This document shows, in pieces, positions 7,427 to 54,863 of a stretch of 64,000 nt of DNA. The notes under the pieces were generated by a model. That model was given only the letters and a program-made list of their open reading frames with translations. It was not told the origin of the DNA and did no database searches. A program made the translations under genes and the position numbers. How positions within the stretch are numbered: the first letter of the stretch is position 1; every line of letters begins with the position of its first letter. Origin of the DNA: Piromyces finnis finn (Eukaryota > Fungi > Neocallimastigomycota); contig MCFH01000009.1 of NCBI GenBank assembly GCA_002104945.1, forward strand, positions 744,001-808,000, read 5' to 3'.

Positions 7427-9581
7427 TCAAACCATTTGCTTTTTCTCATCTTTTTTAAATTTTATAAACATCATGTATGAATTATAGAATAAATTATCAA
7501 GTACTTCTTTATATGTGTCATTAAAAATATTCTCAACAATATTTACACATTTCTCATTTGAATTGAATGGTTGCATACTTATATTTGGTAAAAGATATGT
7601 TTTCTTTAATTCAGCAATTTCATTTGTTAATTTTTTCATCGTTTTACTCGTAATATTTACTGCATATAAAGATTCAGTTGAAATAAATATTTCATATATT
7701 TTTGTAATTATTTGAAGAACCTCGCTAAATGTTGATTCTGCGTTATTTTTTTTAGTTTTTCCAAAATTATCATTTAAAATTTCATTTTCATTATCCTTTA
7801 ATAAAATACCACTTTGAATACTTGTAGTTTCATTAATAGATATAAGAAAACTTTTTTCTGAAAATTTTTCAAGATAATCGAATGCAATAGATTTTATGTT
7901 GTAATTATCAATAGAAAATCTATTTAAAAATACGTTAGAATTTTCATTATTTGGCATTTTGGCTTGACTAATATACTTTTTAAATTTTTCATATTCTTTG
8001 CAAAACAACTATAATCGATTAATTATATAATAATTATTAATTATATAATTGTTTGTATTTATAATATAGCAATAAGTATCTTACCACATTTTCTATGCAA
8101 CAATTATCTAAACAATATAAAATAAATTCATTAAGTAAATTTTTATCCTTTAATAAAGATTTAAGCCCTTCAATTGAAGTGTCACATTTTTTAAGTTTTT
8201 TTTCCATTTTTAGAGAAAATAATATCTTATATATATTATATATAAATAATTATTTATAAATATATTTATATATATCTTAAAAATCATAAAAAATTCTAAA
8301 TAGTTACTGGTTTTGCTATTTGTAGATAATGCATTGTCAAAAGAATAAGAAGTACAAAACTATTAAATGGATTTTAATATTTAATACATATTATATATAT
8401 TATATTATTAAAACATATTCAATTTTTTAAAAATTGCTCGTATCTATATAGTAATAAGCCTTACCAATCTGATGGAAAATATGATATAAGAACACTACAA
8501 CCCACGTTTGGAATAAATGTATATATAAAATATATAACTATAAACATTGTAGACAATATTAATGAAATTAATTGGGACTTCTTCATACTATTTGTTGCTT
8601 TGATACTTCTTAGTTCTAATAATGTAATTGGTGTATATATTAAAAAGTATGAAATAAGACTGACTGTTTGTGGAAGATAATATATACTATTTTATATTAA
8701 TAATTATTAATTATAAGAAATGTTAATCATTAATAAATGTATATATTTATAAATAAACCGAAAATATATGTAAGATTAAGATTATACTTATATGGACAAA
8801 AGCCAACACTTGGAGGATAGATTTTGTAGTTACTATTAATGAATGATACTATAACAGTATAACAACAAATTAATATCGTATATATAAAAATAGTAAAAAA
8901 CATTTTTACTTTGGTAATTTTAGAAAATAATTTTTGAAATAAAGTCTTATTTCTAGATTTTGTTAGATTTTTAAGCATAAGTTCACTTGAAGCATGATAC
9001 TTATTTATCCATTGTGTACTAAAGCATACACAAGAGAATAATACATATGGGTAACCTTAAAACAATAAATATATTTTTATTTTGTCGTTATTATTTTTAT
9101 CATAAAAACAAAATTAATAGTAAATTAATTATATATTTACCTAATCCCGTTAATAAGAGTGAAACAAAACATGCTGAAGTTTTATAATAAACCTTTAATA
9201 AATAAAATTATTAAAATATCCTATTTATTATTATCTTCGTAAAATAATTAAATAATTATGATAAAAAGAAACATTATTCAAAACTCTTACATCAATTTGA
9301 AAGGCATTAATTATTATAAATATATAACCTATAATGAATAAGAGAGATAACTTAAAATAATTACTGTTCATAATATGTTTTTTTTTAATAAAAAATAGCA
9401 CGATTGTTGTTATTATAATATATAATAATGATGAATAAATAAAAATATAATATAGCGGATGTACTATAAATAGATCATTAAATTTATCTAATGTATCCGC
9501 CGTTTCTGAGCATTTCTTATAATAATTAACTGCTCTAGGATTATTTGGATCTAATCCAGTATCTTCAAAACTATAACTAGA

Positions 9582-10356: not shown

Positions 10357-11348
10357 CTAAATTTATTTATTAAACACAAATTTAGACTTATAAAAGTTGT
10401 CTTCATTATTTCTGTTAGAAAATCTAAAAATTTTATCATAAACTTTATTAACTAGTGAAATGTATTTAATATGTTTAAATTTTAGTATAAATACAAATTT
10501 GTAATTGTTAATTAAATCTTTGTAATAAAATAGTAATAAATTACCATAACAATTTCAACTTAATATAATTTATGATATAGTACTACTATTATTACATTCT
10601 ATTCAAACTGCATGTATTTATATATTTACATTATGGCTTAAATATCTAATAAAAACATTACATATAAATGTATTTGTTTTATGTATATTCTAACAAAAAT
10701 ATTAATTATTTTTTGAACGTATAGCCCAAGCCCATAAAATTAAACTTTATGTTTCTATTATCTAGCAGGTCACTTCTTCTAACAATAAAACATAACTTTA
10801 TTCTATTAGGCAACTTTATAATTAATAACACTACTTTTTTTATAACATATTTTATAATAATTTTTTTTATTAAGAGTGAAAATTTTAATAATTTTTTTTT
10901 TTTAAAATTAATATTTATAAAATAATAAAATATTTAAATTTCATATAATAGTAAAAAGAGAAAATAATCAATATTAAAATATCTTTAATTTTTATTTTCT
11001 ATATTTAATTCTATTAAATTATTTTTTTTTAAAAAAAAAACATTAATATAGTAGTATAACACTTTCTAATATATAATATAAAATAAAACTATACTATATT
11101 AATACAGTATTATATTATTATAATATTGTTATTTGTTTTAGAATTTTAATTATTTTAATAAATGTACCAAAAATATTCATTCTAATATTCAAAAATATTA
11201 ATAAAACTATATTATCATTAGGTTTTTTTAAAAAAAAAAGATAGTATATTAAAATAAACTATAATATATAATAAATCTATCTAATATAATTGAAACTAAG
11301 AATTAGTTAAATTTAAAAATTATATTTATAATTTAATATATATTTTGA

Positions 11349-23900: not shown

Positions 23901-26329
23901 TTCAAAGATACTGTTTTAGAAAACTTTATATTCAAAGGTAATTATGCTAAAGTTGGTGGTGGTGCTTATGTAAGTTAATATTATAGTTATAAATAAAGTA
24001 TAATTGAAGTATTGAAAGATTTTATTAATACCATTTTCTTAAATATTATAATTAGTACACCAGTAATCTTGAATCTACACCAAAATTCCTTCCAGATCCT
24101 CCATATACTGAAGGTGATTCTGCTGGATTTGGTAGATTCTTATCATCCGAACCAAGTAAATTTGAATTTAAAGGAACCTTTGAAAATAATTTAGAAATTT
24201 ATAGTGGAAAAGAATTAAAAAGTTTCACATTTGAACTATTAGATGCTTGGAATAGTTTATATGTTTCTGATAACGTATTCTCAAATGTTAAAACTTTAAC
24301 TTTCTTAGCTATAAAAATTATCGATGAAGAAGAATATATTAACTATGGTGATACTCAAAGTACTAATGCTATTATTAGAGGAAATACTTTTGAATTATTC
24401 GATCAAGGTATAAGGGATATAAATATTAAATGATTTAAAGATAATTATTTATTAAATTAAATAAAAAAAATATAAAATATAATTTAATTAAATCTAGGTG
24501 TATGCCAACTTGATCAATTTAAGATTTATGGTAAGCCTGGTGTATATTATCTTGTGTTCTATATACCGTATGTATTCTAAATAATATATATATATTTGTT
24601 TGTTTGTTTATTTATTTATTTATTTATTTATTTAATAAAATATTTATAAATACATTTTTTAATATCAAAAATTTTATATAATCAACAGTCTTTCAGGACA
24701 TAGTAATCTTGTTCATCAAAATTTGACTGCAAGAGTTACTATTACTGATTGTAATTCAAAAGTTACTGGTCTTTATCCAATAACTTCTGAAGTTGCTCCA
24801 GAATTCCAAGAATGCTCTACACCAAAATGTGAAGGTGAATATTCCTGTCTTAATAAAGGTAATTGTATTAAACCTCCGGAATTAGTTGATCCTAACGATC
24901 CTGATGATGCTTTCTGTGAATGTCAAGCAGGTTGGAAAGGACCTATGTAAGTACTGTTTAATTAAATAAAATATATATATATAAGAGATATATATAGAAT
25001 CTATATATTAAAATAATATTTTAAATTATTTAATAAAGTTGTAATGATAAAGATTATTATGAATGGAAATCAGCAAATACGATTTTTAACATAACTACAA
25101 TTATTTTGATTATTGTATTAATAATATGTGGAGCTGCTATTATTATTAATAAAAATAAGTTATTATTCTCTACTTCATATCCATGGTTATTATTAATTTG
25201 TGATATTGTTTGTATATTAGCACTTTGCTCTATTTTCTTCTTCAGAACTGAACCAAATGCTTCCATGTGTCTTGTTTATCCATTGATTCATTATATTAGT
25301 TTTATTTGTCTTTGGGGTATGATAATGTTCATATTCTATAAATCTAAACTCATTGTAGCTCTCCCAACTAAATCAAACAGTACATCCGCCCAAATTAGTA
25401 TTAGGCAATCATTCTTTATACAAAGTACAAATAATAATACAACAAATCAAGATAACATATCAAAAGGTGACAAACTTGAACCACAAAAACAAAGTAATCA
25501 AGATTTCAGTATATCCTTATTAGAAACCCAATCAAGAATGAGAGAAGAATTTATTCATTTAATTTTAACTATTATATTCTCTGTTGCTTACATTATCTTT
25601 ATTTCAGTATGGTTAATCTTAGCTGTTGTTAAGCAAAATAATGGCGTTGAAAATGAAAGTCACTTATCTAATGGTGAAATTGTTAAGACTTGTAAAGTTA
25701 ATTACTTAGAACCTGTTACATATATTCAATTGTTCCTTCTTCTCTTTGGAATTACTTTTACAAACAGAAAATGGTCTCTTGGTGGTTATCACATTGATCT
25801 TAGACATTTTGCTTTCGGTATGGCAAATTGGATTCTTTGTGGACCATTCATTACTGTAAGAATAAACAAAAAATATATTTAAAATAAAAAATATGAAATT
25901 TTATATAAATAATTGACAAAAAATATATATAAATTTATTATAATTATAGATTATTACTTTCACTATGATGAACGATAATCCAAGTGCCCAACTTTCATTA
26001 TACAGAGTCAGTATTATGCTTTCAATGACAGTAAGTATAATAAATATTACTTAAAAATATAGTAGTTATTTGAAATATTAATTTCATCTATAATATTTAA
26101 ATAATTATAGCCAATTATTCCAATCATTGTAGTTCCAAAATTATTATTGATTAATGATAAGAATGTTAATACTGATGATTACTCTACATTTGCTATTCCA
26201 TTTAGTGAAAAGCAAGTATCTAAACTTACATCTAATTACAATTCTGAAGTATCTAATTCTCAAACAGGTACTGGTGCTGCTTCATCTTTCAATCAAGGAA
26301 GAGGAAGTGGTGTTGATAGTTATATATAA
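20940..26329 (+). CDS. Class-C-like GPCR: signal peptide, long right-handed beta-helix (pectin-lyase-fold/GG-A-I repeats) ectodomain, EGF-like domain, 7TM
   Basis: Signal MLKYLFIFLFLFKYIYA. Repeated AGAIY/GGCF/AGAIF/GGGL/GGGAY motifs in N-rich exons. EGF-like CEGEYSCLNKGNCIKP..FCECQAGWKGP. The 25106-25882 exon and following exons give about 7 hydrophobic segments. Confidence 0.8.
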
Positions 26330-41995: not shown

Positions 41996-44900
41996 ATGTC
42001 ATCATACTCATCATCTGACGAAGAAGATAATTTAGAATGTCCATTATGTATGGAGGAAATTGATATAGCAGATAAATATTTTAAACCATGTGTCTGTGGT
42101 TATCAAGTAAGTCATTTCTTAAAAATAGTAAAGTTTTATTAAATTGAAGTAAATTGGTATTAATATTTGGTTTTTAGATTTGCCGCTTTTGTTGGCATCA
42201 TATTAAAGAGGATTTAAATGGTTTATGTCCGGGTTGTAGAAGGGAATACACTGAGGAAATGGTTCAATTCAAACCATTGTCATCTGAAAAGTAAGTTATT
42301 ACTATTCATTAAATATAATTGAATTATAATAATTAATATATAAAATTTTTAATAGGTTGGCACAATTAAAAGCTAAAAGAAAGGCAAAGAAACGTGAAAA
42401 GAAGGAACAAGAAAATGTAACTAAAAAACATTATGCAAATGTTAGGGTTATTCAAAAGAATTTGGTATATGTTATAGGTTTACCATCTTATATAGCTAAT
42501 GAAGAGGTAATATTATTTTATTATTGAATGAATAAAGAGAAATTACAAATTAATATATCATTATTATATCTTATAAATAGACAATTAAGCAGTATGATTA
42601 TTTTGGTCAGTATGGTAAAATTACAAAGGTAGTGATTAACAAGAAAACTCATTCACCTCATCAATCGTCTGTGGGAATATATATTACATATTCAAAGAAG
42701 GAAGAAGCAGAAAGGGCTATAGAATCAGTAGATAATATTATATTTGATGGTCGACAAGTGAAGTATGTATATTATGATAAGTATTTTTATATTATATAGT
42801 ATAATTAATGATTTTCATACAACACTAGGGCATCTTATGGTACAACAAAGTATTGTACATTTTATTTAAGAGGACAAGTATGTCAAAACCCTCAATGTAT
42901 GTATTTACATGAGCCAGGAGAAGAAATAGAGTCAAAGGAAGACCTAATAAAGTAAGTATATATATTATAAATGTTATAAATAATGAAGAATGATAAATAA
43001 TAATATAATGTATGTTTTTTTTATATTTCTTGATATTTTTAAATGCTTGAATCAAAAGCAAAACGCAGTCAATTCTTCAATCACCTACAACACCCCATGT
43101 TAAAGAAATTAAAACATCAACTCAACCTAAGCCTGTAAGTATTGACATTCATATGTAAAGAGAAAAACTTTAAACAATATTATTAATGTTATAAAATATA
43201 CTATGTGTAGATTAAAACAACTATTTATCGAGAAAAAGATGAAACTTCGGCATTACCAGCATCGGCAAATTGGTAAATTTAATTATAAATATGATTATTT
43301 ATAGTAAATATTTTGTATTCTTTCTAAAAAATATATATTTAATATATATATAAATAAATGAAATTAGGGGTAGTCGAAATAATAAACCCAAAATCGAAGA
43401 TGGGGAAAAGAAGGCAATATCAATAAGTTTATCTGATTTAATATCAAAGTCAAATGAGAATTCTAAGATACATAATGTTAATCTTTTAAGATCAAAATCA
43501 GATTCTCAGTCATCATTGAAAACAAAAACTGAAAATAAGACAAAAACAATTTCTTCAAGTAAAAGCCATAGTTTAATAAGTACTACTGTTAATTTAGCAT
43601 TAGATAAAAATGAATTTAATGAAGACCATCCAGAAAAAATAATTGAATCTAGTAATGTACGTGATGAAGAATATCCTGCTTTGTCAACATTATTAAATAA
43701 GAAAAATTCTCATTCAAAGGAAGGTCAATCTCAGTCATTGATAATGTCTCCACAATCAACAAATAGTAATTTAAATACATCTATTTCTTCAATCAATAGT
43801 AAAGAAACAATACATAAAGAAGAGAGTGAAAGTATTTTTAAAAGCAATGATGATAGTATTTACAGCAATGATAGTAGTACAGAAGTAGATAAATCAGATG
43901 AAGAAAACCCAGAAGAAATAGAAAATATTTCAAAAACCGAATCTTTAATTCCTGAAAAGGAGGAGGTAAATGTAAGCGTGGCTGAAGAGACTTTGAAAAA
44001 CCCAATACTTGATGAAATATCTAAGGCTTATACAATGGATCATTTGTCATCCTCTGTTTCAAATGTATCATCTCCTCAATATAACCCTATTACAACATCT
44101 TCTTCATTTAGCATCTTCTCCGAAATTAGTAAAACTCCAAACCAGAATTCTAAAGAAGGCAAAACCAAAACTACAAATTCTCCTCCACCAGGTTTTGAAA
44201 ATAAAACAGAAGCTAGAACATCAAATATTTCAAATACAAATGCTTATGTAACAGACAATTTAAACAATTCTCTTTCTAAATTGAAAATACTAGATGATGA
44301 AATTATTCAAGATCAAAGCAATAGTAATTTCAATAAATTTAAATATAATGGTCCATTTGATCCATTTAATGATATTGCATTAAATAATTTGATGAATGTT
44401 AATTCAATTATGAATAGTTACACAAAACATTATCCACAAGGTTTTAGCAGTTTTAATAATATATATAATAATCCAATTAATAATTTGAATCAAATGAATC
44501 CGTTAATAAGTGAAACTAATATCAACCAATTTCAAAATCATCTTAGTCAAAAATACCTTGAACAATACTATCAAAATTTAAATCGTGAACAAATTCAAAA
44601 TAATTTAAGAGCAATGTTACCAAATATAAATATATCACCATTCTCAAATAACACTGATTTGAATTCATGGTCCCAACCATCCCAAAACAGTTTTAGTGAT
44701 AATTTATTTAATAGTTATAATTCATTAGCTGCAACTATTAATGGAAATAATATGTTTTGTAATAATTTCAATAATAATATGAATATGAACTTTTTAAAAC
44801 AATTGCAAATTAATCAAATGTTAAGTAATATGCAAAAAGCTCAACAACAACAACAACAGCAGCAAATAGATAATAATCTATCTAATAATAATCTCAATTT

Positions 44901-47900
44901 AAATAATACTAATCAAGATTTTAAATCATTACCATTTAAAGATTCAGCTATTATGGCAGTTAAAATGAGCAATACTACTACTACTACTAATAATAATAAT
45001 AATATTGATAGTTCAAATCAAATAAATATGAATTCAATGAATCTTTTCCAAAATTTGAATATGAAAGCAAATGATATGGCGAATCAACTAAATCCAGTTA
45101 GTCCAATTAATTCTTATGCAAACTTAAATCAATTAAATCAAATGAGTAATTTAAATGGAATGACACAATTAAATAATATGAATCCAATAAATAGTATTAA
45201 TAACTTACAAAATCTTAATCAAATGAATAATAATTTTAATAATATTTCTGTAATGAATATGACTTCAAACTCATTGTCCTCTCCAATTATTCCAAGCTCT
45301 AGTTCAATAAATTCTATGCATATTAAAGACTTGAATGAATTAGATAAGGAAGGACTTGGAGGATTAACATCTTCTGTTAATCCACTTTATGATAATGATA
45401 AAATGAATTTTTTTCAGAAATTTAATGGATTGAGTACACAGGGTAATTAATTTTATGATTATATTTATATCATTAATATTGCTATTTTTAGTTTTAGTAT
45501 TATAATTAAGATCTTTATTTATATAGTTTAAACATCGTGTAGTATTTACATTAAATAATATCAAGATTGTTTAATTAGAAGATTATAAAGTTTTATTTTT
45601 TATAATTATTAATTATTGAAATATAATGATTCAACAATAATAAATTTACCAAACGATTAACAATGTTATTTATTATTTTTTTTAATAATTATAAAAATTC
45701 AATATATAAAAAGGAATTAAAAATTAAGAATAATTAAATTTAATAAATTAATTACAGCATGATTGATTAAAATATCGGATAAAATTTATTTATTTATTTT
45801 TAAAATGAAATGATAAGTAAAATTATACCCATTATATTCATCAGATAGAAAAAAAGAGAAAACGTAGTATATTGTTAATTGTTATTTTTGTTTTTTCTTT
45901 ATTTTAATATTTTTATAAATAAATATAATTAATATATTATTAAATATTTATATAATAATTTGTATTTAATAGAGCTGGAAAACAATAATATCAATTCATT
46001 ATCGGATTTTTGGAAAAGCAAAATACAGGACACAGGAGGTGGAAATGAAAATAGTAATGAGTATGATTTATTAAGCAATAGTATATTAGAACAACGATTT
46101 AATGAAGCAGAGCAAAAAAGTATAGGTTTTCTAAATAATTCTAAAGGCAAATAAAAATATTTTAACAAGTTATTCTAGTAAAATAATAATATTTTGAATG
46201 TTAATAATAATATTTAATAATATTTATATTTTAATATATTATTTAATAGATAATATTGATGAATCTGTAAATCCTAATAAAAGCAAAACTATTTATCCAG
46301 AAAAAAGCATTTCAGCCATTGAATTAGAAGAAGCAAAAGAAAAAGGAGATAATGAACAAAAATCGCAGGAAAAATTAAGCGCTAAGCCTTCTAAAAATGA
46401 AATATTGGATTTACTAACTAAAAAGTCACCACTTGAGCAAAAAAAGTCAAATGAAGATAATAACAAAGAAACTTCAAAGTCTTTAAAAGCAAATTTGGAT
46501 TTAAATAATATTAAGATTATTAATAATAAAACAATATCTATTATTAATACAAGTGGTAAAAATAAAAATTCAAGTAAAATAGATACCATACAAGAAAAAG
46601 AAAATATAAGTAATAATATAAATAATATAGTTTCAAAATCTAAAAAGAAGGAGAAAAAGGAAAATCAAAAATCTGAAATAAAGAAAGATGTTCTAAATAA
46701 TGTGAAAAGAAAAGAGCAAAATGAACAAAAGTCGGAGCCACTTATTATAAAGTTTGAACCAAAGAAACCAAAAAAAGAAAATGAAATAAATCATAGTTTA
46801 AAGAATAAGGAAGTATCAAATATTTTAAAGAATGATGAAAGTAAATTAAAAGAAAATGAACCAATGAAATTAGTTGTATCAAGAAAATCAAAAAAGGAAG
46901 AAAAATTGAATTTAAAAAATGAAGTCAAACAAAACAATATAATAAAAGATGAAAGAAAGAAGGAATCAATTATGCAATCAAATATTTTTGATATTTTACC
47001 AGAAGATACACCACAAGAAGTTACATCTAAAGTTGAAGATAAGGTAAATAGTATTATTGAGAATGAAATGAAAGAACCGGTAAGTGAGGAAAGTACTTTT
47101 AAAAAGCAAGAATCTTTAAATATAATATCATCCACTAGTAATACAACAAAGAAAAGTAAGAAAAAATCAAAACATAAGAAGAAAAAGACTTCTGAAAAGC
47201 CAAAGGATAATTTTGAAGAAAGTATTGATTTAATTAATAAAGAATTGGATTTACAAGAACAGTCGAATAAAATTTCAAAAGAATTAATAAGTAATAAAAA
47301 AGAAGGTGAAAGTACTGGTCAATCAAAAAAAAAGAAAAAATCAAAGAAAAAGAATGATGATATAAAGAAAAAGAATGATGAGGAAAAAAATGATGATATA
47401 GAATTACATATACTAAAAGTGAAAAACGGTGAGACACAACTTATGAAGGAAACGCAACTTTATCGATTACCATTAACTGCTATTGCAAAGAAACTTATAC
47501 CAGAAGATTCCGGAACAACATTAGGTTTAAAACCAATCTTCCCACCAGATATTGAAATTGAAGCTTTATGTAATGTTATTGTCAAAAGGAGTAAGAAAAA
47601 GAAGAGGGATAATATAGATCTTCCATACTTCAAATCAAAAATAGGTCAATTAAATTCAAACTCGGAGGATGATAAAATAGACCTTGATTATATTGATGAT
47701 GTTGAAGAAAATATTATACTTGAGGGAAATGAAGAACATACAAAATTAATGAAACAAAAACAAATGGAGATATTAAAAAATCATAAAATGGAAGTTAATA
47801 TGATTACATCTTTAAAACAAATTAAAAGAAGAAACTTAAATAATATTACTAACGGGGTTAATAACAAAAGTAACAATACAATTAGCATTAATAATAAAAA

Positions 47901-49347
47901 CAATGTTATTAATGAAATAGAAATAATAACTGATGATCATTCAGAAGGTGATAATATAATTGAACATTTAACAGATGAGTTTTTAGATGAAGAAGATATT
48001 CAAGAAATTAAAGAAGGATTAGGCTTAGAACCAGATGATATAATTGAGTTGAAAATGACTAATAACATCTTGGAACATCAGGAATTTGTGGATAGATTAA
48101 ATGAAAAAATGATTGATACACAAAAGACAGAAGAATCTAATTCTGAAAATCAATTTTTTGTTTTACAAGCTTTAGATGCTTTGATAAATACAGCAGAGGT
48201 ATATGCAAGTGCCTTGAGGAAACAAATTGAAGAATATGAAAATAAAGATGAGAATGAAGAAGAAAATGAAAGTGATACTGATTCAATAAATTATAATAGA
48301 AAGGTAAAAATATATGAAGCTGTATTGGAAAGTATTAAGGATATAAGAGAAATGGGTCTTTCTGACTATAAAACAATAGAGAAATTATATTTATCTGATC
48401 CGAAAGGGGAGGAAAATTACGAGGACAATATAAATAACTTATTGATTAGTGTGAAATATATAATGCAAGAGTTGGTATTAAATGTTGATGAACCTGACAT
48501 TCTTCCACAAGTTTTGTCATTAAATAAAAATACCAATATATTGTTGTCTAAAATGAAGGGTGATAAATTTAAAGATACTGTTTTGAAACATTATAAAAAG
48601 CTTTTTAAAGAAAAATATGGTAATATAGATTCTTCATATATTCATAATCATGTTTTAACATCTCCTAATGTAAATGTTAAAAAATCCTTAATATGTCCTC
48701 CTACCATTGAAACTAATCATAAAAATAAACATGAAGCAATTCTACCACCATTACCATCACCTCCAAAGAATTCTGTTCCAATTATTGCTAAAACAAATAA
48801 TGGAATCACAACATCTACTTTTGATAAAATCCCTGAAATTATTGAACCTGAAAATTTAAAGAAAGTTAATAAAAATATACAAAGATTTTTAAAAGATTAT
48901 AAAATGGATGAATCAAAAAAGATTATTAAAATAAAAAAGGCGACCAATGAGAAACCATCCTCTTCCAATATTGAGCTTAAAATTGAATATGAAAATGAAG
49001 AAGTTAAAAATAGGGTTGAAAAAATTTCAAAGACTGAAAGTGAATTATATAACTCAACAGAAGATATATTATTAGAGCTTATATTAAAATCTCAAGAAAA
49101 TCAAGAGTTAAAAACAAAACTAATATCAAATTGCTTAAATTTTGATGTAAATTTAGCAAAAAAATTGGCAAATTCTATAAAAATAAAAGAAAAGGAAAAA
49201 GAAAAGAATGCTATGAAAGCTAAAACATATAAGGATAATAGTAAATCAACTGAAACAGGATTAGAAGCTGAATTAAAAGATGAATTTCTAAAGACTGTTA
49301 AAAAAGAGAATGCTCAAAGAAAAGCAAATGAGAATGTTGTTGAGTAA
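41996..49347 (+). CDS. NOT4: Not4/CNOT4 E3 ligase (RING, RRM, CCCH) with very long low-complexity C-terminus; end at 49347 assumes splicing across 45443-45972 and about 46147-46249, otherwise it stops at 45450
   Basis: CPLCMEEIDIADKYFKPCVCGYQ|ICRFCWHHI..CPGCRR; VRVIQKNLVYVIGL; YFGQYGKI; ASYGTTKYC..CQNPQCMYLHEPG. Downstream exons are phase-compatible (all phase 1). Identity confidence is high; the 3' extent is moderate. Confidence 0.85.
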
Positions 49348-49625: not shown

Positions 49626-49942
<317 letters not shown>

Positions 49943-50159
49943 TATTAAGAGTTGTTTAATTTAGGTTTATAATTATGTCAACTTTATTAATATATTTTAT
50001 GATAAAGAACTACTTGCGTTACATTCTTCTCAAACTACATGTATTTATACATTTACATTGTGGCTTAAACATATAATTAAATACAATATATACAAATACG
50101 TTTTAATACATTTCAATACATTTGAATACATGTGACATAACGTTTCACATATTCTAACA
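49943..50159 (-). repeat. 3' LTR (217 bp; TGTTAG...CTTAATA on minus strand)
   Basis: Identical to 54615-54831 except gcgttAcattc/gcgttAaattc (C vs A). Confidence 0.95.
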
Positions 50160-50167
50160 TTCCCCCT
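50160..50167 (-). other. 3' polypurine tract
   Basis: Minus-strand AGGGGGAA directly followed by the TGTTAG LTR start. In one frame it reads KLGLRGNVR, like copia pol ends. Confidence 0.85.
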
Positions 50168-50530
50168 CAAACCTAATTTTCTACTAAGTAAAATTTGGTT
50201 TGCTGGTGAATATGTGCATTTTATTATTTCTAAACTATTAACTATAAACTAAATCTAATGTTTAAAATTTTTATATTTCATTAACTGGAATTTAAAATAT
50301 TTCACATATATTATTCACTAATTGCTTTAAAGAATTTAAATATTACCCTATAACTTCGTTTTTATGGATAAACTGAAAACCTTTGTATAATTGGGTAGTA
50401 TTAAAGTTTAAAATTTGGATTGGATATTCATAAATTGTTATACCATCCATTAAGGATTGAAAACCCTTCCGGTTTTACATTATCCTATAAACTATATTGG
50501 TAATCTCTCTGAGATTTACACAGAATTATA

Positions 50531-50764
50531 GACAACACATGGTTTATCTCTTTGATTTTACGTCCTTATGACAACGCATGGTTTACCTCTTTGGTTTTAC
50601 GTTTTCTTAACAACTCATGGTTAACCTTTGATTTTACGTCCTAATGACAACACATATGGATAACTCTTTTTGGTTTTACGTTCTCTTAACAACCTATGGT
50701 TAATCTTCTTGGTTTTACGTTCTTCGGACAACCTATGGATAACTCTCTGGTTTTATGTCCTTAT
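50531..50764. repeat. Six degenerate 37-42-bp tandem repeats inside the element
   Basis: Units start at 50531, 50570, 50609, 50646, 50688 and 50727; consensus about RACAACNCATGGTTWAYCTCTTTGRTTTTACGTYCTTWT. Confidence 0.9.
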
Positions 50765-51159
50765 AATTACAATTTTCTTTAGAATATTAGCATAATTGTA
50801 TTTCAATCTATTTGTAAATACTAATTAATAATGGTAAAATTTTAATTAAATTCTTAATAGTTATTTAGTTTATGTATATTGAATTTTAACATTTTCTTTT
50901 AGGTGTTTTTCCTTCCTTTTATGCCTTTTGTATTGATTAATTATTCTTATAATATTTAAGAATATTTTACTTTGTATTTGAAATTTTGTTCTTTTCATTT
51001 TTACATATTGAATATTGAATCTTATAAATTTTTACAATTTGAATTTCAATTCATTCTATTTATTAAGCCTTAGTTTCTATGCAATGTTTTAGTTATTTCC
51101 AATGTTTAACTAGAAACAAAAATTATTATCTTGAATTTTAAATTTCGTATATTCACTAC

Positions 51160-51167
51160 TTCCCCCT
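51160..51167 (-). other. Internal (central) polypurine tract copy
   Basis: Second TTCCCCCTCAAA (plus-strand reading), 1,000 bp from the first and not followed by LTR sequence. Confidence 0.7.
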
Positions 51168-51854
51168 CAAATCTAGATGTTTAGTAATAAATATTTAGAT
51201 TTGAAAATGAGAAATTTAAATTTCATAAAATTTCATTCATTTTGCATCAAATTTTCATAATAATGAATAATTTTCCATAACATATACGATAAGTATTAAT
51301 ACCTATATAAATAATAAATAACATATTCTAATGTTTTCATTCATTTTTCTCAATTGCTTATCCTTTAAAATATAGTGAAATAATATTTTCATGATAATAT
51401 ATTTTAATGTAGTGATAATCATAGAATATCAAACTAATGAATAAAATATTCCTCAATTATGTATTTCTTTACTTCAAATTAAAATAAGTAGATATACCAG
51501 TAAAATTATAACAAGTTAATATTGTAAGATAATGACATTTAAAATATCGATTATTGAAGAGAATAAAGTTCTTCTAAATTATATCGAAGTCGGCTCGGTT
51601 AATTAGAATGTCAGCTAATTGGTCGGCGATCACTCACTACGTTGAAAGTGGTGATTTATATATGAGGTTACTAAATCACCGTAAATTATATTTTAAAACG
51701 GCGTCACAACATTCTTGAATGTTGGTAATAAATAAATATGATGAATCAATGTCATCTAAATCTAAGGAGCCCTTACTATGAAGGTGCTACATTGTTATTG
51801 ATGGGACCAAATTAAATATATATAGGTCTAAAACCATCATTAATAATTATCTAT

Positions 51855-51980
51855 GAATATAACTCATTTCACGCTAAGTTAAATCATGATAAGTTGTTAA
51901 AATATTATTGAATATACCCATTTCACGCTAGGTTATTCAAAGTATATATATATGTAGAATATGCGCATTTCACGCTAAGT
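51855..51980. repeat. Three spaced copies of a 24-26-bp motif GAATAT-N3-4-CATTTCACGCTARGT
   Basis: Copies start at 51855, 51910 and 51957 with unrelated AT-rich spacers. Confidence 0.85.
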
Positions 51981-52680
51981 ATTTCTAACTTTAATAAATT
52001 ACCTCATTTGAAATATTTGCTATGTATATTAGCAATAACAGCCTACGGGATGAGCATTTGACCAGTAATATATTTGCTTTATAGGTAGCAATAATTTAAA
52101 TAATGCTTTTGAGGCTAAATATTATCTTAAAGTATTGTTATAATGATTTAATTCAAAGAATAGTATACTGGATTAAATTATATAATACTGATTTGAATGA
52201 AATTATCATAAAGAAATTGATTGACATTTTCACAAGGATAGTTTCAATGTTCATTGCATAATTTCATTACAATAGGGTATTTTATACAAACTTATCAAAT
52301 AATGTTTAATTATTCTAATTCATGTTTCTAATTGTATAAATTTTATGTATTTTCTTTATGTTCTATCTTTCCTCTATGGCGGAAAGAATATTTTCTCATT
52401 AAAATAGTAGTAGTTAAAATATTTTATTATTGCACAAATAATTTATTTACTTGAAATAAATATATATGTTTTCAATAACGATAATGCTATTTTATGAATG
52501 TTAATAAAACTAGTTCTTTTAAAAATAAAATGAATGTTTGTGGAAACGTTGATTGTATGTTTATGAATATTTACATAATTGAATATATGGATTTTTAAAT
52601 GATAATGAATGTAAATTGACATAGTGAGTAGATCAAAATCAAATTAATAAATTTAATAAATTGAGTAAATTAGGAGAATT

Positions 52681-53886
52681 CTAATATACAATATTTATTT
52701 GCCAAAACATTACTAACATTAAAGTAATAAATACATTTGTGAGAGAAATATATTTGAAGTTTACAGTTCCGTTTGAATCTTCTTGTTCTTCATTAAGTTG
52801 GTTATCAATAATATAATAACCACAAGATTCACTATCAACTATATTAATGTCATTATAAATATTAGTTATATCGGTATTGTTAGAGATAATTGGTGTATTG
52901 GATATACTGACTTTACTAATACTAGCATTATAATTAAACTCGCATAACTTATTAATATAAAATATACCAATATTATCACAAATTTCTTTTCCAACTTTAG
53001 TATATTTTTTTTTAAAATTGGTATAGGTTGAATAGTCACAACCTGCAAATAGTGCAGCCTCAGCTGCTCTTCTTCTTACTAATCCTGGAAAAGGTACTAA
53101 AACACCGTTTACCCTTCCTTTGTAGTATTCTAATATCTTTTTATTAATTTCTTCCTTTGTTCTCTGACCATTATTAGTTAATTCATCAATACTTCCAACA
53201 TTATAAGCAAAACTACATAATGCATCATATTCATTTTGATTCCAATTATATTTATAATTGAAAAATTTTACCATAGGACCATATTTTTTTTCGATTGAAA
53301 GTTTTAACCATTCCTCTGCAGTTTTTTCATCTATTGTTAAGCCCTCTTTGATATATGTGCCAGTAATATCATAGTTATCATTGGTAGTACCGTAACCAAT
53401 AGTCCATTTTCCAACCGAATCTTTATAGGCAGTTAATATACATCCTTCAAAACCTTTGATTATGTTAATTATATTGTCACTTACTTTTAATTGATCATTA
53501 TTTAGATTTGTATTTGAAACGCATAGTTGAACAACACTCTTTCCTGGGCATTGGTCCCTATATCTCGTGTAAGATTTTTCTGAACAGTCATCTTCATTTA
53601 TATTTTTACATTTTCCTGTACTTGGAAGAGTTGTTCCATCTGAAAGTTTTTTGACATATTTTATACAGCATTTAATCTTTTCCGAGTCATTTTTACAATA
53701 ACCTGGATATTTTGTAGCATTGCCTTCTTGTCCTTTATATACTATACATTGATCCTCATTAACGCAAACACCTGTTCCGACACTTTCTACATAACATTTT
53801 TGATTTTCAACAGCAATTACCAATGGTAGAATTAAAATTGTCGAAAAAATGTTTAAAAAATATATTACTTTGCTTCTTAATCTCAT
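52681..53886 (-). CDS. Secreted GH24 (phage-type) lysozyme/muramidase with N-terminal Cys-rich module and C-terminal hydrophobic (GPI/TM-like) tail; intronless, 401 aa
   Basis: IKGFEGCILTAYKDSVGKWTIGYG gives the E-x8-D-x5-T catalytic triad; ALCSFAYNVG; GLVRRRAAEAALF. Signal peptide MRLRSKVIYFLNIFSTILILPLVIA; two G-x-C..C..G-x-C repeats; tail ..DSNGTVNFKYISLTNVFITLMLVMFWQINIVY. Confidence 0.92.
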   Translation of the reverse strand: MRLRSKVIYFLNIFSTILILPLVIAVENQKCYVESVGTGVCVNEDQCIVYKGQEGNATKYPGYCKNDSEKIKCCIKYVKKLSDGTTLPSTGKCKNINEDDCSEKSYTRYRDQCPGKSVVQLCVSNTNLNNDQLKVSDNIINIIKGFEGCILTAYKDSVGKWTIGYGTTNDNYDITGTYIKEGLTIDEKTAEEWLKLSIEKKYGPMVKFFNYKYNWNQNEYDALCSFAYNVGSIDELTNNGQRTKEEINKKILEYYKGRVNGVLVPFPGLVRRRAAEAALFAGCDYSTYTNFKKKYTKVGKEICDNIGIFYINKLCEFNYNASISKVSISNTPIISNNTDITNIYNDINIVDSESCGYYIIDNQLNEEQEDSNGTVNFKYISLTNVFITLMLVMFWQINIVY

Positions 53887-54440
53887 TCTTTGGAGTATTT
53901 ATAATATTAATATATTTGATGAAATTTAATAACTCAATTGTAAATAATTATATAAAATAAATTTAGAGTTCACTAGTTAATTTATACTGTTTGTAGTGAA
54001 TAAAGTAAACTGAGAATGAAATTCTATTGTTTATTTAATTCTAAATTTATATTTCGAATTTGTACTTTATTAACTTTGAATTTAATTTTACAATATTTAT
54101 TCATAAATAGTTTCTAAAATAATTAATTCTTTTCAATTTTGAGTACTTTAATTTATTTATTTCTGAGTTTTAAGCATTGGCTGTATTTGAATAAAATAAA
54201 TTTTATGTTGTTTCAAAATTATTTAGAGTTCAATTTGTTTTGTTTATTTTTAAATTTAAAGATTTAAATTAAAAGTTAAAAAAATTTAAAATTCAATTTT
54301 AGAATAATTTGCTTTCGGAATTTAAAATTGTCTATATTATTTTAGTATAAGGAAACTTTGTTTATATCAGGTAATGTTTTTCTATTTTAGATTGCCATTT
54401 CAATTTCAAAATTTTGAAATCTCAAATTCTAGATCTCAAA

Positions 54441-54524
54441 ACAATTTTACCAAACATAGATAATTTCAGATTAAATAATTTAATTGTAATGGTTAGAATT
54501 TCCTACTGTTTTCTCCTTTGTCAT
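54441..54524 (-). pseudogene. Possible decayed copia gag 5' remnant
   Basis: The ATG at 54524, about 75 nt after the PBS, reads MTKEKTVGNSNHYN*NYLI*NYL, reminiscent of the copia gag NY-x-x-W motif with W mutated to a stop. Weak similarity only. Confidence 0.3.
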
Positions 54525-54599
54525 AATTTAGTGTCCAGCACTCTTATTCCATTTCTAAGAATCCTTTTAAGAGGCATTGAGATTCTCTCTTGAGAGTCA

Positions 54600-54614
54600 A
54601 TGAGACTCTTAATC
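54600..54614 (-). other. Primer-binding site complementary to the anticodon arm of tRNA-Lys(CUU) (half-tRNA type)
   Basis: Plus strand ATGAGACTCTTAATC equals nt 26-40 of the canonical metazoan-type tRNA-Lys(CUU) as I recall it (..GCATGAGACTCTTAATCTCAGG..). It abuts the LTR end with no gap. Confidence 0.75.
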
Positions 54615-54830
54615 TATTAAGAGTTGTTTAATTTAGGTTTATAATTATGTCAACTTTATTAATATATTTTATGATAAAGAACTACTTGCGTTAAATTCTT
54701 CTCAAACTACATGTATTTATACATTTACATTGTGGCTTAAACATATAATTAAATACAATATATACAAATACGTTTTAATACATTTCAATACATTTGAATA
54801 CATGTGACATAACGTTTCACATATTCTAAC

Positions 54831-54831
<1 letters not shown>
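54615..54831 (-). repeat. 5' LTR (217 bp)
   Basis: Direct repeat of 49943-50159. Minus strand has a TATAAATA box (54714-54721), AATAAA (54655-54660) and three ATGTATTNAA repeats in U3. Confidence 0.95.

Positions 54832-54863
<32 letters not shown>

Follow-up and report, generated by a model that had tools for sequence, protein, structure and literature searches.

The window analysed here, a 64-kb stretch of the genome of the anaerobic gut fungus Piromyces finnis (GCA_002104945.1, contig MCFH01000009.1; G+C ~18% here), contains at positions 49943-54831 a 4889-bp element of the long terminal repeat (LTR) type, which reads in sense on the minus strand and carries an intact gene for a predicted phage-type (GH24) lysozyme. 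The element is bounded by two direct repeats of 217 nt each (49943-50159 and 54615-54831) that are identical at 216 of 217 positions and whose similarity ends precisely at both boundaries, in agreement with the very young insertion proposed in an initial annotation of this DNA. The motif TTGAGGGGGAA occurs twice in the window, compared with 0.01 occurrences expected by chance, and both copies are inside the element on the minus strand: one (50160-50170) abuts the LTR, and the other (51160-51170) lies exactly 1000 nt further in. These would be the 3' and central polypurine tracts (PPTs) of the initial annotation. The LTR additionally contains TATAAATA at position 111 and AATAAA at position 172. 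Because of the position and strand of TTGAGGGGGAA, together with TATAAATA and AATAAA in the LTR, the sense of the element is assigned to the minus strand, and therefore 54615-54831 is the 5' LTR and 49943-50159 the 3' LTR. The plus-strand orientation was rejected, as the PPT, TATA box, and poly(A) signal are compatible with the minus strand only. The possibility that the internal PPT is the relic of a nested LTR was likewise rejected, with the local alignment of its surroundings to the PPT/LTR junction falling within the range of shuffled sequences.

This copy, labelled L001 among the loci of its family, shares most of its parts with its siblings. The classes within the family are defined by the content of an exchangeable segment between the leader and the 3' region, which we refer to as the slot; some classes contain a long open reading frame (ORF) there, and one contains a seryl-tRNA synthetase (SerRS) sequence. 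The features of the window copy are as follows.

49938-49942, no strand: left target-site duplication, ATAAT on the plus strand, in an (AAT)n microsatellite
49943-50159, minus strand: 3' LTR, 217 nt; sense strand TGTTAG...TTAATA
50160-50173, minus strand: PPT abutting the 3' LTR; contains GAGGGGGAA; same junction in all 21 copies
50174-52650, minus strand: constant non-coding 3' internal region, in every class and 95-100% identical between classes; no ORF, Pfam, or Rfam match
50506-50764, minus strand: approximately six 39-nt tandem repeats within the constant region
51160-51173, minus strand: second, internal polypurine motif, with a homologous site at the Neocallimastix locus
52651-52789, minus strand: segment common to the ORF-bearing classes and absent from the SerRS class; last ~36 cargo codons (hydrophobic C-terminal tail), stop codon, and next 30 nt
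52681-53886, minus strand: cargo gene, intact single-exon ORF of 401 aa; GenBank annotation, lysozyme-like protein
53059-53457, minus strand: GH24 (phage-type) lysozyme domain, aa 144-276; FEG...D...T motif kept, aligned to solved GH24 enzymes
53512-53808, minus strand: Cys-rich N-terminal module, aa 27-125; no Pfam family
53812-53886, minus strand: predicted signal peptide, aa 1-25, read by eye and supported by an N-terminal helix in the model of a sibling cargo
53887-54396, minus strand: cassette-specific upstream region, common to lysozyme classes A and B and to class D, different in other classes
54397-54614, minus strand: leader common to all classes; a primer-binding site would be expected in its first 45 nt (54570-54614), which are conserved and not of TGG type
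54615-54831, minus strand: 5' LTR; TATAAATA at 54714-54721, AATAAA at 54655-54660
54832-54836, no strand: right target-site duplication, ATAAT on the plus strand

The 5 bp flanking this copy are identical (ATAAT on the plus strand, at 49938-49942 and 54832-54836). The insertion site is an (AAT)n microsatellite (49669-49942, ~89 units, and 54827-54863, 12 units), and because both flanks lie within this array, the match is uninformative; the matching flanks of the initial annotation are thus real but trivial at this locus, whereas sibling copies have unique duplications. The LTR termini are TG...TA in all copies (TGTTAG...TTAATA) and so depart from the TG...CA pattern. ORFs of at least 60 aa in the element are limited to the 401-aa lysozyme and one nested 60-aa ORF. 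The initial annotation had described an element with no gag or pol ORF and with stop-riddled traces of these genes. The former holds, but the traces are not confirmed: a Pfam scan of ten open segments of the slot and constant region gave two matches to class II aminoacyl-tRNA synthetase and none to gag or pol. An Rfam scan of the element returned nothing credible.

Further copies were located via the cargo protein, its paralogues, and an annotated pseudo-gene of 50-52 aa in the 3' region of the element. At least 21 full-length copies were recovered, on different contigs or at different positions, and a perfect 5-bp target-site duplication is present in 19/21, nearly all of them distinct (TAAAC is found at two loci). 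The six copies with an intact GH24 gene are flanked by ATTAT, CCCTC, ATTCT, TAAAC, TGGAT, and GTTTC, in line with the expectation of the initial annotation that several full-length copies would each have their own duplication. The two LTRs are identical in 8 of the 21 copies and show one difference in 7 more, and the window copy differs from another lysozyme copy, L006, at only 4 of 4889 positions, with unrelated flanks. Common to all copies are the LTRs, a leader of ~220 nt, a 3' region of 2.5 kb, and the PPT, with the PPT/LTR junction present in 21/21. The unit as a whole, together with its cargo, has moved to many loci by repeated, recent transposition. An artefact of assembly, a segmental duplication, or a one-off arrangement is excluded because the 21 copies lie at separate loci, 19 of them with a perfect duplication, and the flanks of the near-identical window copy and L006 are unrelated.

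One of these copies, L012 (5928-9059), is a 3132-bp deletion derivative that lacks the cargo slot and has its own duplication (CAACT) and a single mismatch between its LTRs; this copy suggests that no cis-acting parts are required beyond the LTRs, leader, and constant region. Two other loci have unusual arrangements. L010 and L016 (MCFH01000012.1, ~900.9-912.2 kb) are SerRS-class copies in opposite orientation, separated by ~1.9 kb that contains an additional solo LTR; L016 has no matching duplication and an 11-nt gap in one LTR, an arrangement that suggests recombination between neighbouring copies. The lysozyme copy at L023 (7012-12479, class B) is ~570 bp longer than its siblings, with extra sequence in the constant region.

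The copies differ in the content of the slot. The lysozyme is found in six copies as three alleles. Class A (two copies, the window and L006) encodes a GH24 protein of 401 aa, and class B (four copies, L002 and L021-L023) one of 400 aa that is 82% identical to that of class A and occurs as two alleles. The class C proteins (432-434 aa; L003, L015, and a third copy known from its protein alone) have a signal peptide, Cys-rich module, and C-terminal tail of the A/B type and another central domain. Class D (L027, one copy) has a 514-aa ORF with its own signal peptide, the class C central domain, an extra domain that gave no Pfam, NCBIfam, or PDB match, and the same tail. The ~36 final cargo codons and the stop codon lie in the segment common to classes A-D, and complete single-exon cargo ORFs are present in nine fetched copies, each with its own duplication. 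Class E, the SerRS class, has 11 copies and no long ORF, and the slot-less deletion derivative described above is represented by one copy (L012). The lysozyme named as the element's cargo in the initial annotation is thus the cargo of six copies, but it is one of several alternative cassettes, which that reading had missed, and the commonest sibling carries a dead SerRS gene.

Two observations concern individual class C and D copies. At L027 (7773-9317), the annotated model of 438 aa starts inside the longer 514-aa ORF, which begins with a signal-peptide-like segment; the deposited gene model is probably truncated at its 5' end. In L003, a run of 28 A residues occupies element positions 411-438 in the divergent leader of this class C copy, and it may be the remnant of a polyadenylated RNA taken up in cassette exchange. 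A search of the cassettes' 3' edges for a remnant of poly(A), which would mark mRNA capture, found none.

The class E slot contains a broken, intronless copy of a eukaryotic cytoplasmic SerRS gene in the sense orientation of the element. Three open pieces match the Candida SerRS 3qne collinearly (residues 191-239, 307-354, and 356-436; E 1e-8 to 2e-26). The recognisable part is interrupted by one or more in-frame stops and one or more frameshifts, and the first ~190 codons are not recognisable. The stop-riddled coding trace in the family is therefore, on the strength of these alignments, a captured host gene rather than gag or pol. Because all 11 copies share the slot at 96-100% identity, the SerRS gene was dead before class E was amplified. 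The existence of an intronless SerRS retro-copy means that the family transduces cellular genes through an RNA stage, and as the dead SerRS class is the commonest, cargo function is not needed for mobility.

The lysozyme ORF runs from 53886 to 52681 in the sense orientation of the element, beginning 729 nt after the 5' LTR, and gives a full-length match to the Pfam family Phage_lysozyme (PF00959; aa 144-276, profile positions 1-125 of 125, E 1e-23), with a score of 84.5 bits against a cut-off of 22.3. The complete, intronless GH24 ORF downstream of the TATA box of the 5' LTR is therefore as first described, and so is its contrast with the host genes, since the cargo is a single exon whereas neighbouring gene models are multi-exon. 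Solved GH24 lysozymes match the cargo at E 5e-18, and the FEG...Y.D.VG.WTIGYG block aligns residue for residue with them and is kept in alleles A and B. From what is known of the active site of T4 lysozyme, we take this block to hold the catalytic Glu and the following Asp and Thr; the cargo is a predicted enzyme. The nearest relatives of the GH24 domain are metagenomic proteins with choline-binding or cell-wall-binding repeats (59-61% identity over the domain), while the 892 phage endolysin records that match the cargo reach 45% identity at best. A bacterial or phage origin of the domain, as the initial annotation had it, is plausible on these similarities.

Overall, the cargo protein consists of a signal peptide, a Cys-rich module, the GH24 muramidase, and a hydrophobic C-terminal tail. 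The Cys-rich N-terminal module recurs as repeats in large metagenomic proteins that also have phage-tail-lysozyme and NlpC/P60 domains. We infer that the lysozyme cargo would have an antibacterial role. All six P. finnis GH24 genes returned by our search sit in copies of the element. A high GH24 count in Piromyces has been noted in a survey, without a function or cause being given (PMC8778642).

Evidence for selection on the lysozyme comes from comparing its alleles. Alleles A and B differ by 101 substitutions, which are distributed over the three codon positions as 37/38/26, with no stop codon and a single in-frame 3-nt gap. In a neutral simulation of 101 substitutions, for which the spectrum was taken from non-coding DNA of the family itself, 10 of 3000 runs left the ORF open (P = 0.0033). 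In the non-coding block directly 3' of the ORF, indel events number 7 per 56 substitutions. Between A and B, dN/dS is 2.0 by the Nei-Gojobori method (NG86), and synonymous changes make up 11.5% (0.115) of the non-stop changes compared with 27% (0.274) expected (P ~1e-4). Between the two class B alleles, 21 changes are non-synonymous and 3 synonymous, and the Cys-rich module has the same pattern of non-synonymous excess between classes. These comparisons fit selection that would keep the frame open while favouring amino-acid change, and the proposal of the initial annotation that the cargo is under selection gains support from both the open frame and the deficit of synonymous changes.

The identity profile between classes A and B is mosaic: a near-identical leader is followed by a divergent ORF, divergence continues for ~750 nt beyond it, and over the last 2 kb identity is 99-100% in all copies. 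This profile points to recombination between element lineages.

For the central domain that classes C and D share, sequence searches of Pfam, NCBIfam, and PDB gave no match, and a profile search of 1.84 billion representative proteins returned 272 relatives. Among these, three are RHS-repeat proteins in which the domain is C-terminal and directly follows the Rhs-associated core.

P0253: core 226-304, domain 320-482
P0217: core 521-589, domain 607-791
P0191: core 369-424, domain 447-627

The position after the Rhs core is the site of the variable toxin tip in bacterial polymorphic toxins. BLASTP of P0004 against P0191 gives 29% identity (E 1e-10), and in one carrier the RHS body has 61% identity to a protein of Victivallaceae, which are gut Lentisphaerota. 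The domain is absent from 54 bacterial loci related to one carrier protein. A structure model of this orphan domain is poor (pLDDT 49), and its best Foldseek matches, the C-terminal domain of a type VI secretion system (T6SS) effector and colicin M-like bacteriocins, are not significant (E 0.3-3); a likeness to these folds is a possible lead only. Judging from the domains assigned, the ORF-bearing cassettes would all encode predicted secreted proteins built around domains that bacteria or phages use against bacterial envelopes or cells.

Related sequences are found in a second genus of anaerobic fungi. In Neocallimastix lanati and N. californiae, a gene encoding GH24, chitin-binding, and NlpC/P60 domains lies between 225-nt direct repeats that are 88% identical (L024, 7798-13438; L025 and L026 likewise). 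Two stretches of the constant region, which take in the internal polypurine-like site, have 75%-identical homologues downstream of this gene. Either the Neocallimastix locus is an old relative of the element, or part of the element derives from it as the ancestral locus.

The affinity of the machinery that moves the family was approached through the 19-nt PPT/LTR junction, TTGAGGGGGAA|TGTTAGAA, for which JGI metagenomes were scanned. The junction was found in 34 metagenome contigs, and all pol-bearing contigs that gave Pfam matches have RVT_2 or the full copia domain order. Among the G+C-richer contigs are genuine Ty1/copia elements that encode RVT_2, rve, and gag_pre-integrs domains along with a copia-type gag. 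The junction may thus be read as a copia-type signature that supports a copia-like helper, short of proof. Ten AT-rich contigs also have the final ~40 nt of the internal region in common with the family, together with the opening 16 nt of the LTR, and are relatives in other anaerobic fungi; the exact 25-nt start of the LTR had no match in the JGI metagenomes. Cargo homologues across the 34 contigs are limited to the C-terminal tail, in L028, and a secreted SUEL-lectin protein on a metagenome contig has the same kind of tail. In L028, L038, L043, L044, and L054 (G+C 0.21-0.27), the ORFs upstream of the junction encode SUEL-lectin, Cys-rich membrane, FHA-RING, and coiled-coil proteins; the 5' LTRs lie off these contigs, and the ORFs are candidate element cargo only.

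The element itself has no pol by which it could be classified. An RVT_2 domain with the integrase upstream of the reverse transcriptase (RT), which is the mark of Pseudoviridae, is absent, and the helper class is unreadable from the element. The stretch of 45 nt that follows the 5' LTR is conserved from copy to copy but does not begin with TGG, and the intact primer-binding site of the initial annotation is not confirmed; in the plant copia element L033, from the same scan, a TGG-type site directly follows the LTR. The P. finnis tRNA-Trp, the single tRNA type compared, has 5 nt of complementarity to the post-LTR stretch, and the tRNA genes in the window and 20 loci are two tRNA-Trp genes only, with no useful complementarity. 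A 9-nt inverted repeat joins the LTR end and the adjacent leader. Self-priming between leader and LTR was considered and is doubtful: this inverted repeat was all that was found, and as the mechanism is understood it could not act as a fold-back primer. Of the non-autonomous copia element first proposed, the non-autonomous LTR retrotransposon stands, but the sole ground for the copia label is the 19-nt junction, which is shared with plant elements.

Several further observations concern the surroundings of the copies. At 10560-10669 of the window, a 110-nt fragment is 83% identical to LTR positions 45-155; it is probably part of a solo LTR that belongs to a related family. Comparable diverged LTR pieces adjoin other copies (L002, 13969-14086; L022, 12008-12150; L023, 2195-2285). 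Two plus-strand ORFs adjoin the element in the window (46198-49347, 1049 aa, and 43516-45450, 644 aa); both are uninterrupted, with a strong skew of A over T and G over C. They were considered as pol and rejected, as they match no Pfam family and look like low-complexity proteins. Genes for class C G-protein-coupled receptors (GPCRs; 7tm_3) and RGS-domain proteins recur near copies (25106-25882 and 7427-8008 in the window; L003, L012, and L017), and this probably merely reflects the large size of these families in P. finnis.

In the mechanism that we propose, the elements would be transcribed from the 5' LTR, and proteins encoded by an autonomous element, probably a Ty1/copia-like one, would reverse-transcribe the RNA and integrate it in trans. 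Cassettes would be gained and swapped by template switching between co-packaged RNAs, which would explain both the mosaic identity and the lack of introns in the cargo. Selection would keep the lysozyme- and toxin-type cargos open and diversify them because they act on bacteria that live in the gut alongside the fungus, with retrotransposition raising cargo copy number and generating allelic variety. We consider it probable that the family consists of currently or very recently active non-autonomous LTR retrotransposons of P. finnis that carry transduced genes and whose cargos are selected as antibacterial. A wider reading, which we put forward tentatively as a possibility, is that gut fungi use this retrotransposon family as a cassette platform for an antibacterial arsenal, in which bacterial or phage genes (the GH24 muramidase, the Rhs-tip toxin domain, and possibly others) would be joined to fungal secretion and anchoring modules, exchanged by template switching, amplified, and diversified under positive selection, as a eukaryotic, RNA-mediated counterpart of polymorphic-toxin and integron-like systems.

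A number of observations weigh against these readings, and several of them favour an alternative account in which the lysozyme was captured by chance, is useless to both fungus and element, and is intact only through youth. Most LTR pairs differ at 0-1 positions, leaving no time for decay, and within a class the youth of the copies makes their intactness uninformative. The most numerous class carries a dead gene, so that amplification is independent of useful cargo, and the slot-less derivative has still transposed. The clusters that contain the cargo protein consist of genome-derived entries, with none from assembled sequencing runs, a composition that counts weakly against abundant cargo transcripts. 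The selection estimates, furthermore, come from few pairwise comparisons between alleles, and the recombination seen in the mosaic may confound them. Capture of a useless passenger is nonetheless unlikely in our view, as the 101 substitutions between alleles introduced no stop (P = 0.0033) and a single in-frame gap, compared with 7 indels per 56 substitutions in the non-coding neighbour, non-synonymous changes are in excess, the catalytic motif is retained in all alleles, and a second, unrelated domain of antibacterial type occupies the same slot in other copies. A different use for the ORF would be to the element itself, if a translated ORF in the gag position stabilised the RNA or helped to package it, whatever the protein. 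The ORF does begin where gag would, in sense orientation, and the ORF-bearing classes share their 3' coding end and 3' region; yet the ORF-less SerRS class and the slot-less derivative have transposed at least as well, and if any ORF would do, neither the excess of amino-acid change nor the retention of the catalytic motif nor the secretion signals would be expected, making this service to the element very improbable. That there is no retrotransposon cargo at all, but rather a host lysozyme gene between solo LTRs or an artefact of assembly or segmental duplication, could be entertained from the window alone, where both 5-bp flanks fall in the (AAT)n array. We regard it as refuted by the recurrence of the LTR-leader-cargo-3' unit with unique flanks and the duplications CCCTC, ATTCT, TAAAC, TGGAT, and GTTTC.

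The identity of the helper is a separate matter. The copia-type junction matches are plant elements (the one checked is closest to Asteraceae), so the signature is generic; the 5' LTR is not followed by a canonical tRNA-type primer-binding site, and the LTR terminates in TA instead of CA. Protein look-ups, a route that did not include a DNA search of the P. finnis assembly, turned up no autonomous partner that has this LTR. A helper of Ty3/gypsy type, or another LTR element, perhaps with unconventional priming, would be in keeping with the lack of a pol to classify, the missing TGG-type site, the 9-nt inverted repeat across the LTR end and leader, and the TG...TA termini. It would have to be reconciled with the 19-nt junction, which among pol-bearing matches is shared with RVT_2-type (copia) elements only, and with the 5-bp duplications, which fit copia although gypsy is not excluded by them. 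A non-copia helper is in our assessment doubtful, and a Ty1/copia-like one is the helper that we favour.

If the cargo is expressed, the family would provide a concrete route for multiplying and diversifying horizontally acquired genes in Neocallimastigomycota, and it would account for the published and unexplained GH24 'expansion' in Piromyces. It would also offer a natural system in which to ask whether retrotransposition can be adaptive gene amplification in the competition between gut fungi and bacteria. A practical warning is that what is counted in these genomes as an 'expanded' gene family can be the copy number of a transposon.

A literature search found no description of the P. finnis element. 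Gene transduction by LTR retrotransposons is known mainly in the form of plant gene fragments and retroviral oncogenes, and mechanistically the P. finnis family is a gene-transducing non-autonomous LTR retrotransposon. Such elements, including maize Bs1, have been reviewed (PMC13317346; also PMC6431247, in which LTR-element transduction is cited for animals and plants). Like Bs1 and other gene-transducing elements of plants, the P. finnis family has no full coding set of its own and carries intronless, host-derived sequence in sense between its LTRs, which moves as a unit; the accepted routes of Bs1-type capture are template switching or read-through. Bs1, however, holds fragments of three host genes at low copy number, whereas the P. 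finnis family carries whole ORFs with secretion signals, in alternative cassettes and in 21 or more young copies. The host is moreover an early-diverging fungus, and two of the cassette types are of predicted bacterial or phage ancestry.

With large retrotransposon derivatives (LARDs) and miniature terminal-repeat retrotransposons (TRIMs), the family shares LTRs, a PPT, a conserved non-coding interior, the lack of gag and pol, and presumed mobilisation in trans. In contrast to LARDs, whose interior is non-coding by definition, it adds a protein-coding slot, its LTRs are short (217 nt), and its primer site is non-canonical. The likeness to Ty1/copia elements (Pseudoviridae) consists of the 5-bp target duplication and a PPT/LTR junction, TTGAGGGGGAA|TGTTAGAA, identical to that of RVT_2-encoding elements, whereas gag, protease, integrase, RT, and a TGG-type primer site are all lacking, the LTR ends in TA, and the matching copia elements are from plants.

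Outside of LTR elements, the multiplication of a gene for a secreted fungal effector by a transposable element has a parallel in the ToxB Helitron-like element of Pyrenophora tritici-repentis (bioRxiv 10.1101/2025.11.13.688278). ToxB is carried by a DNA element in tandem copies and is directed against plants, whereas the P. finnis LTR element is RNA-mediated, its copies are dispersed, and its cargos are of enzyme types directed against bacteria. Among secreted fungal GH24 muramidases with a non-catalytic module, that of Trichophaea saccata (PMC10394673; PDB 8b2s, matched at E 3e-7) is comparable, but the accessory module in P. finnis is Cys-rich rather than SH3-like, the closest relatives are bacterial or phage proteins, and the gene lies in a mobile element. 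Finally, the family resembles bacterial Rhs polymorphic toxins in that one of its cargo domains occurs as the tip after an Rhs core and in that constant ends are combined with exchangeable effector domains. The P. finnis cargo differs in having no RHS repeats and no adjacent immunity gene that we could see, and in that exchange takes place inside a retrotransposon. Two of the cassette types, the phage-type muramidase and the Rhs toxin tip, would trace to the weaponry that bacteria deploy against one another.

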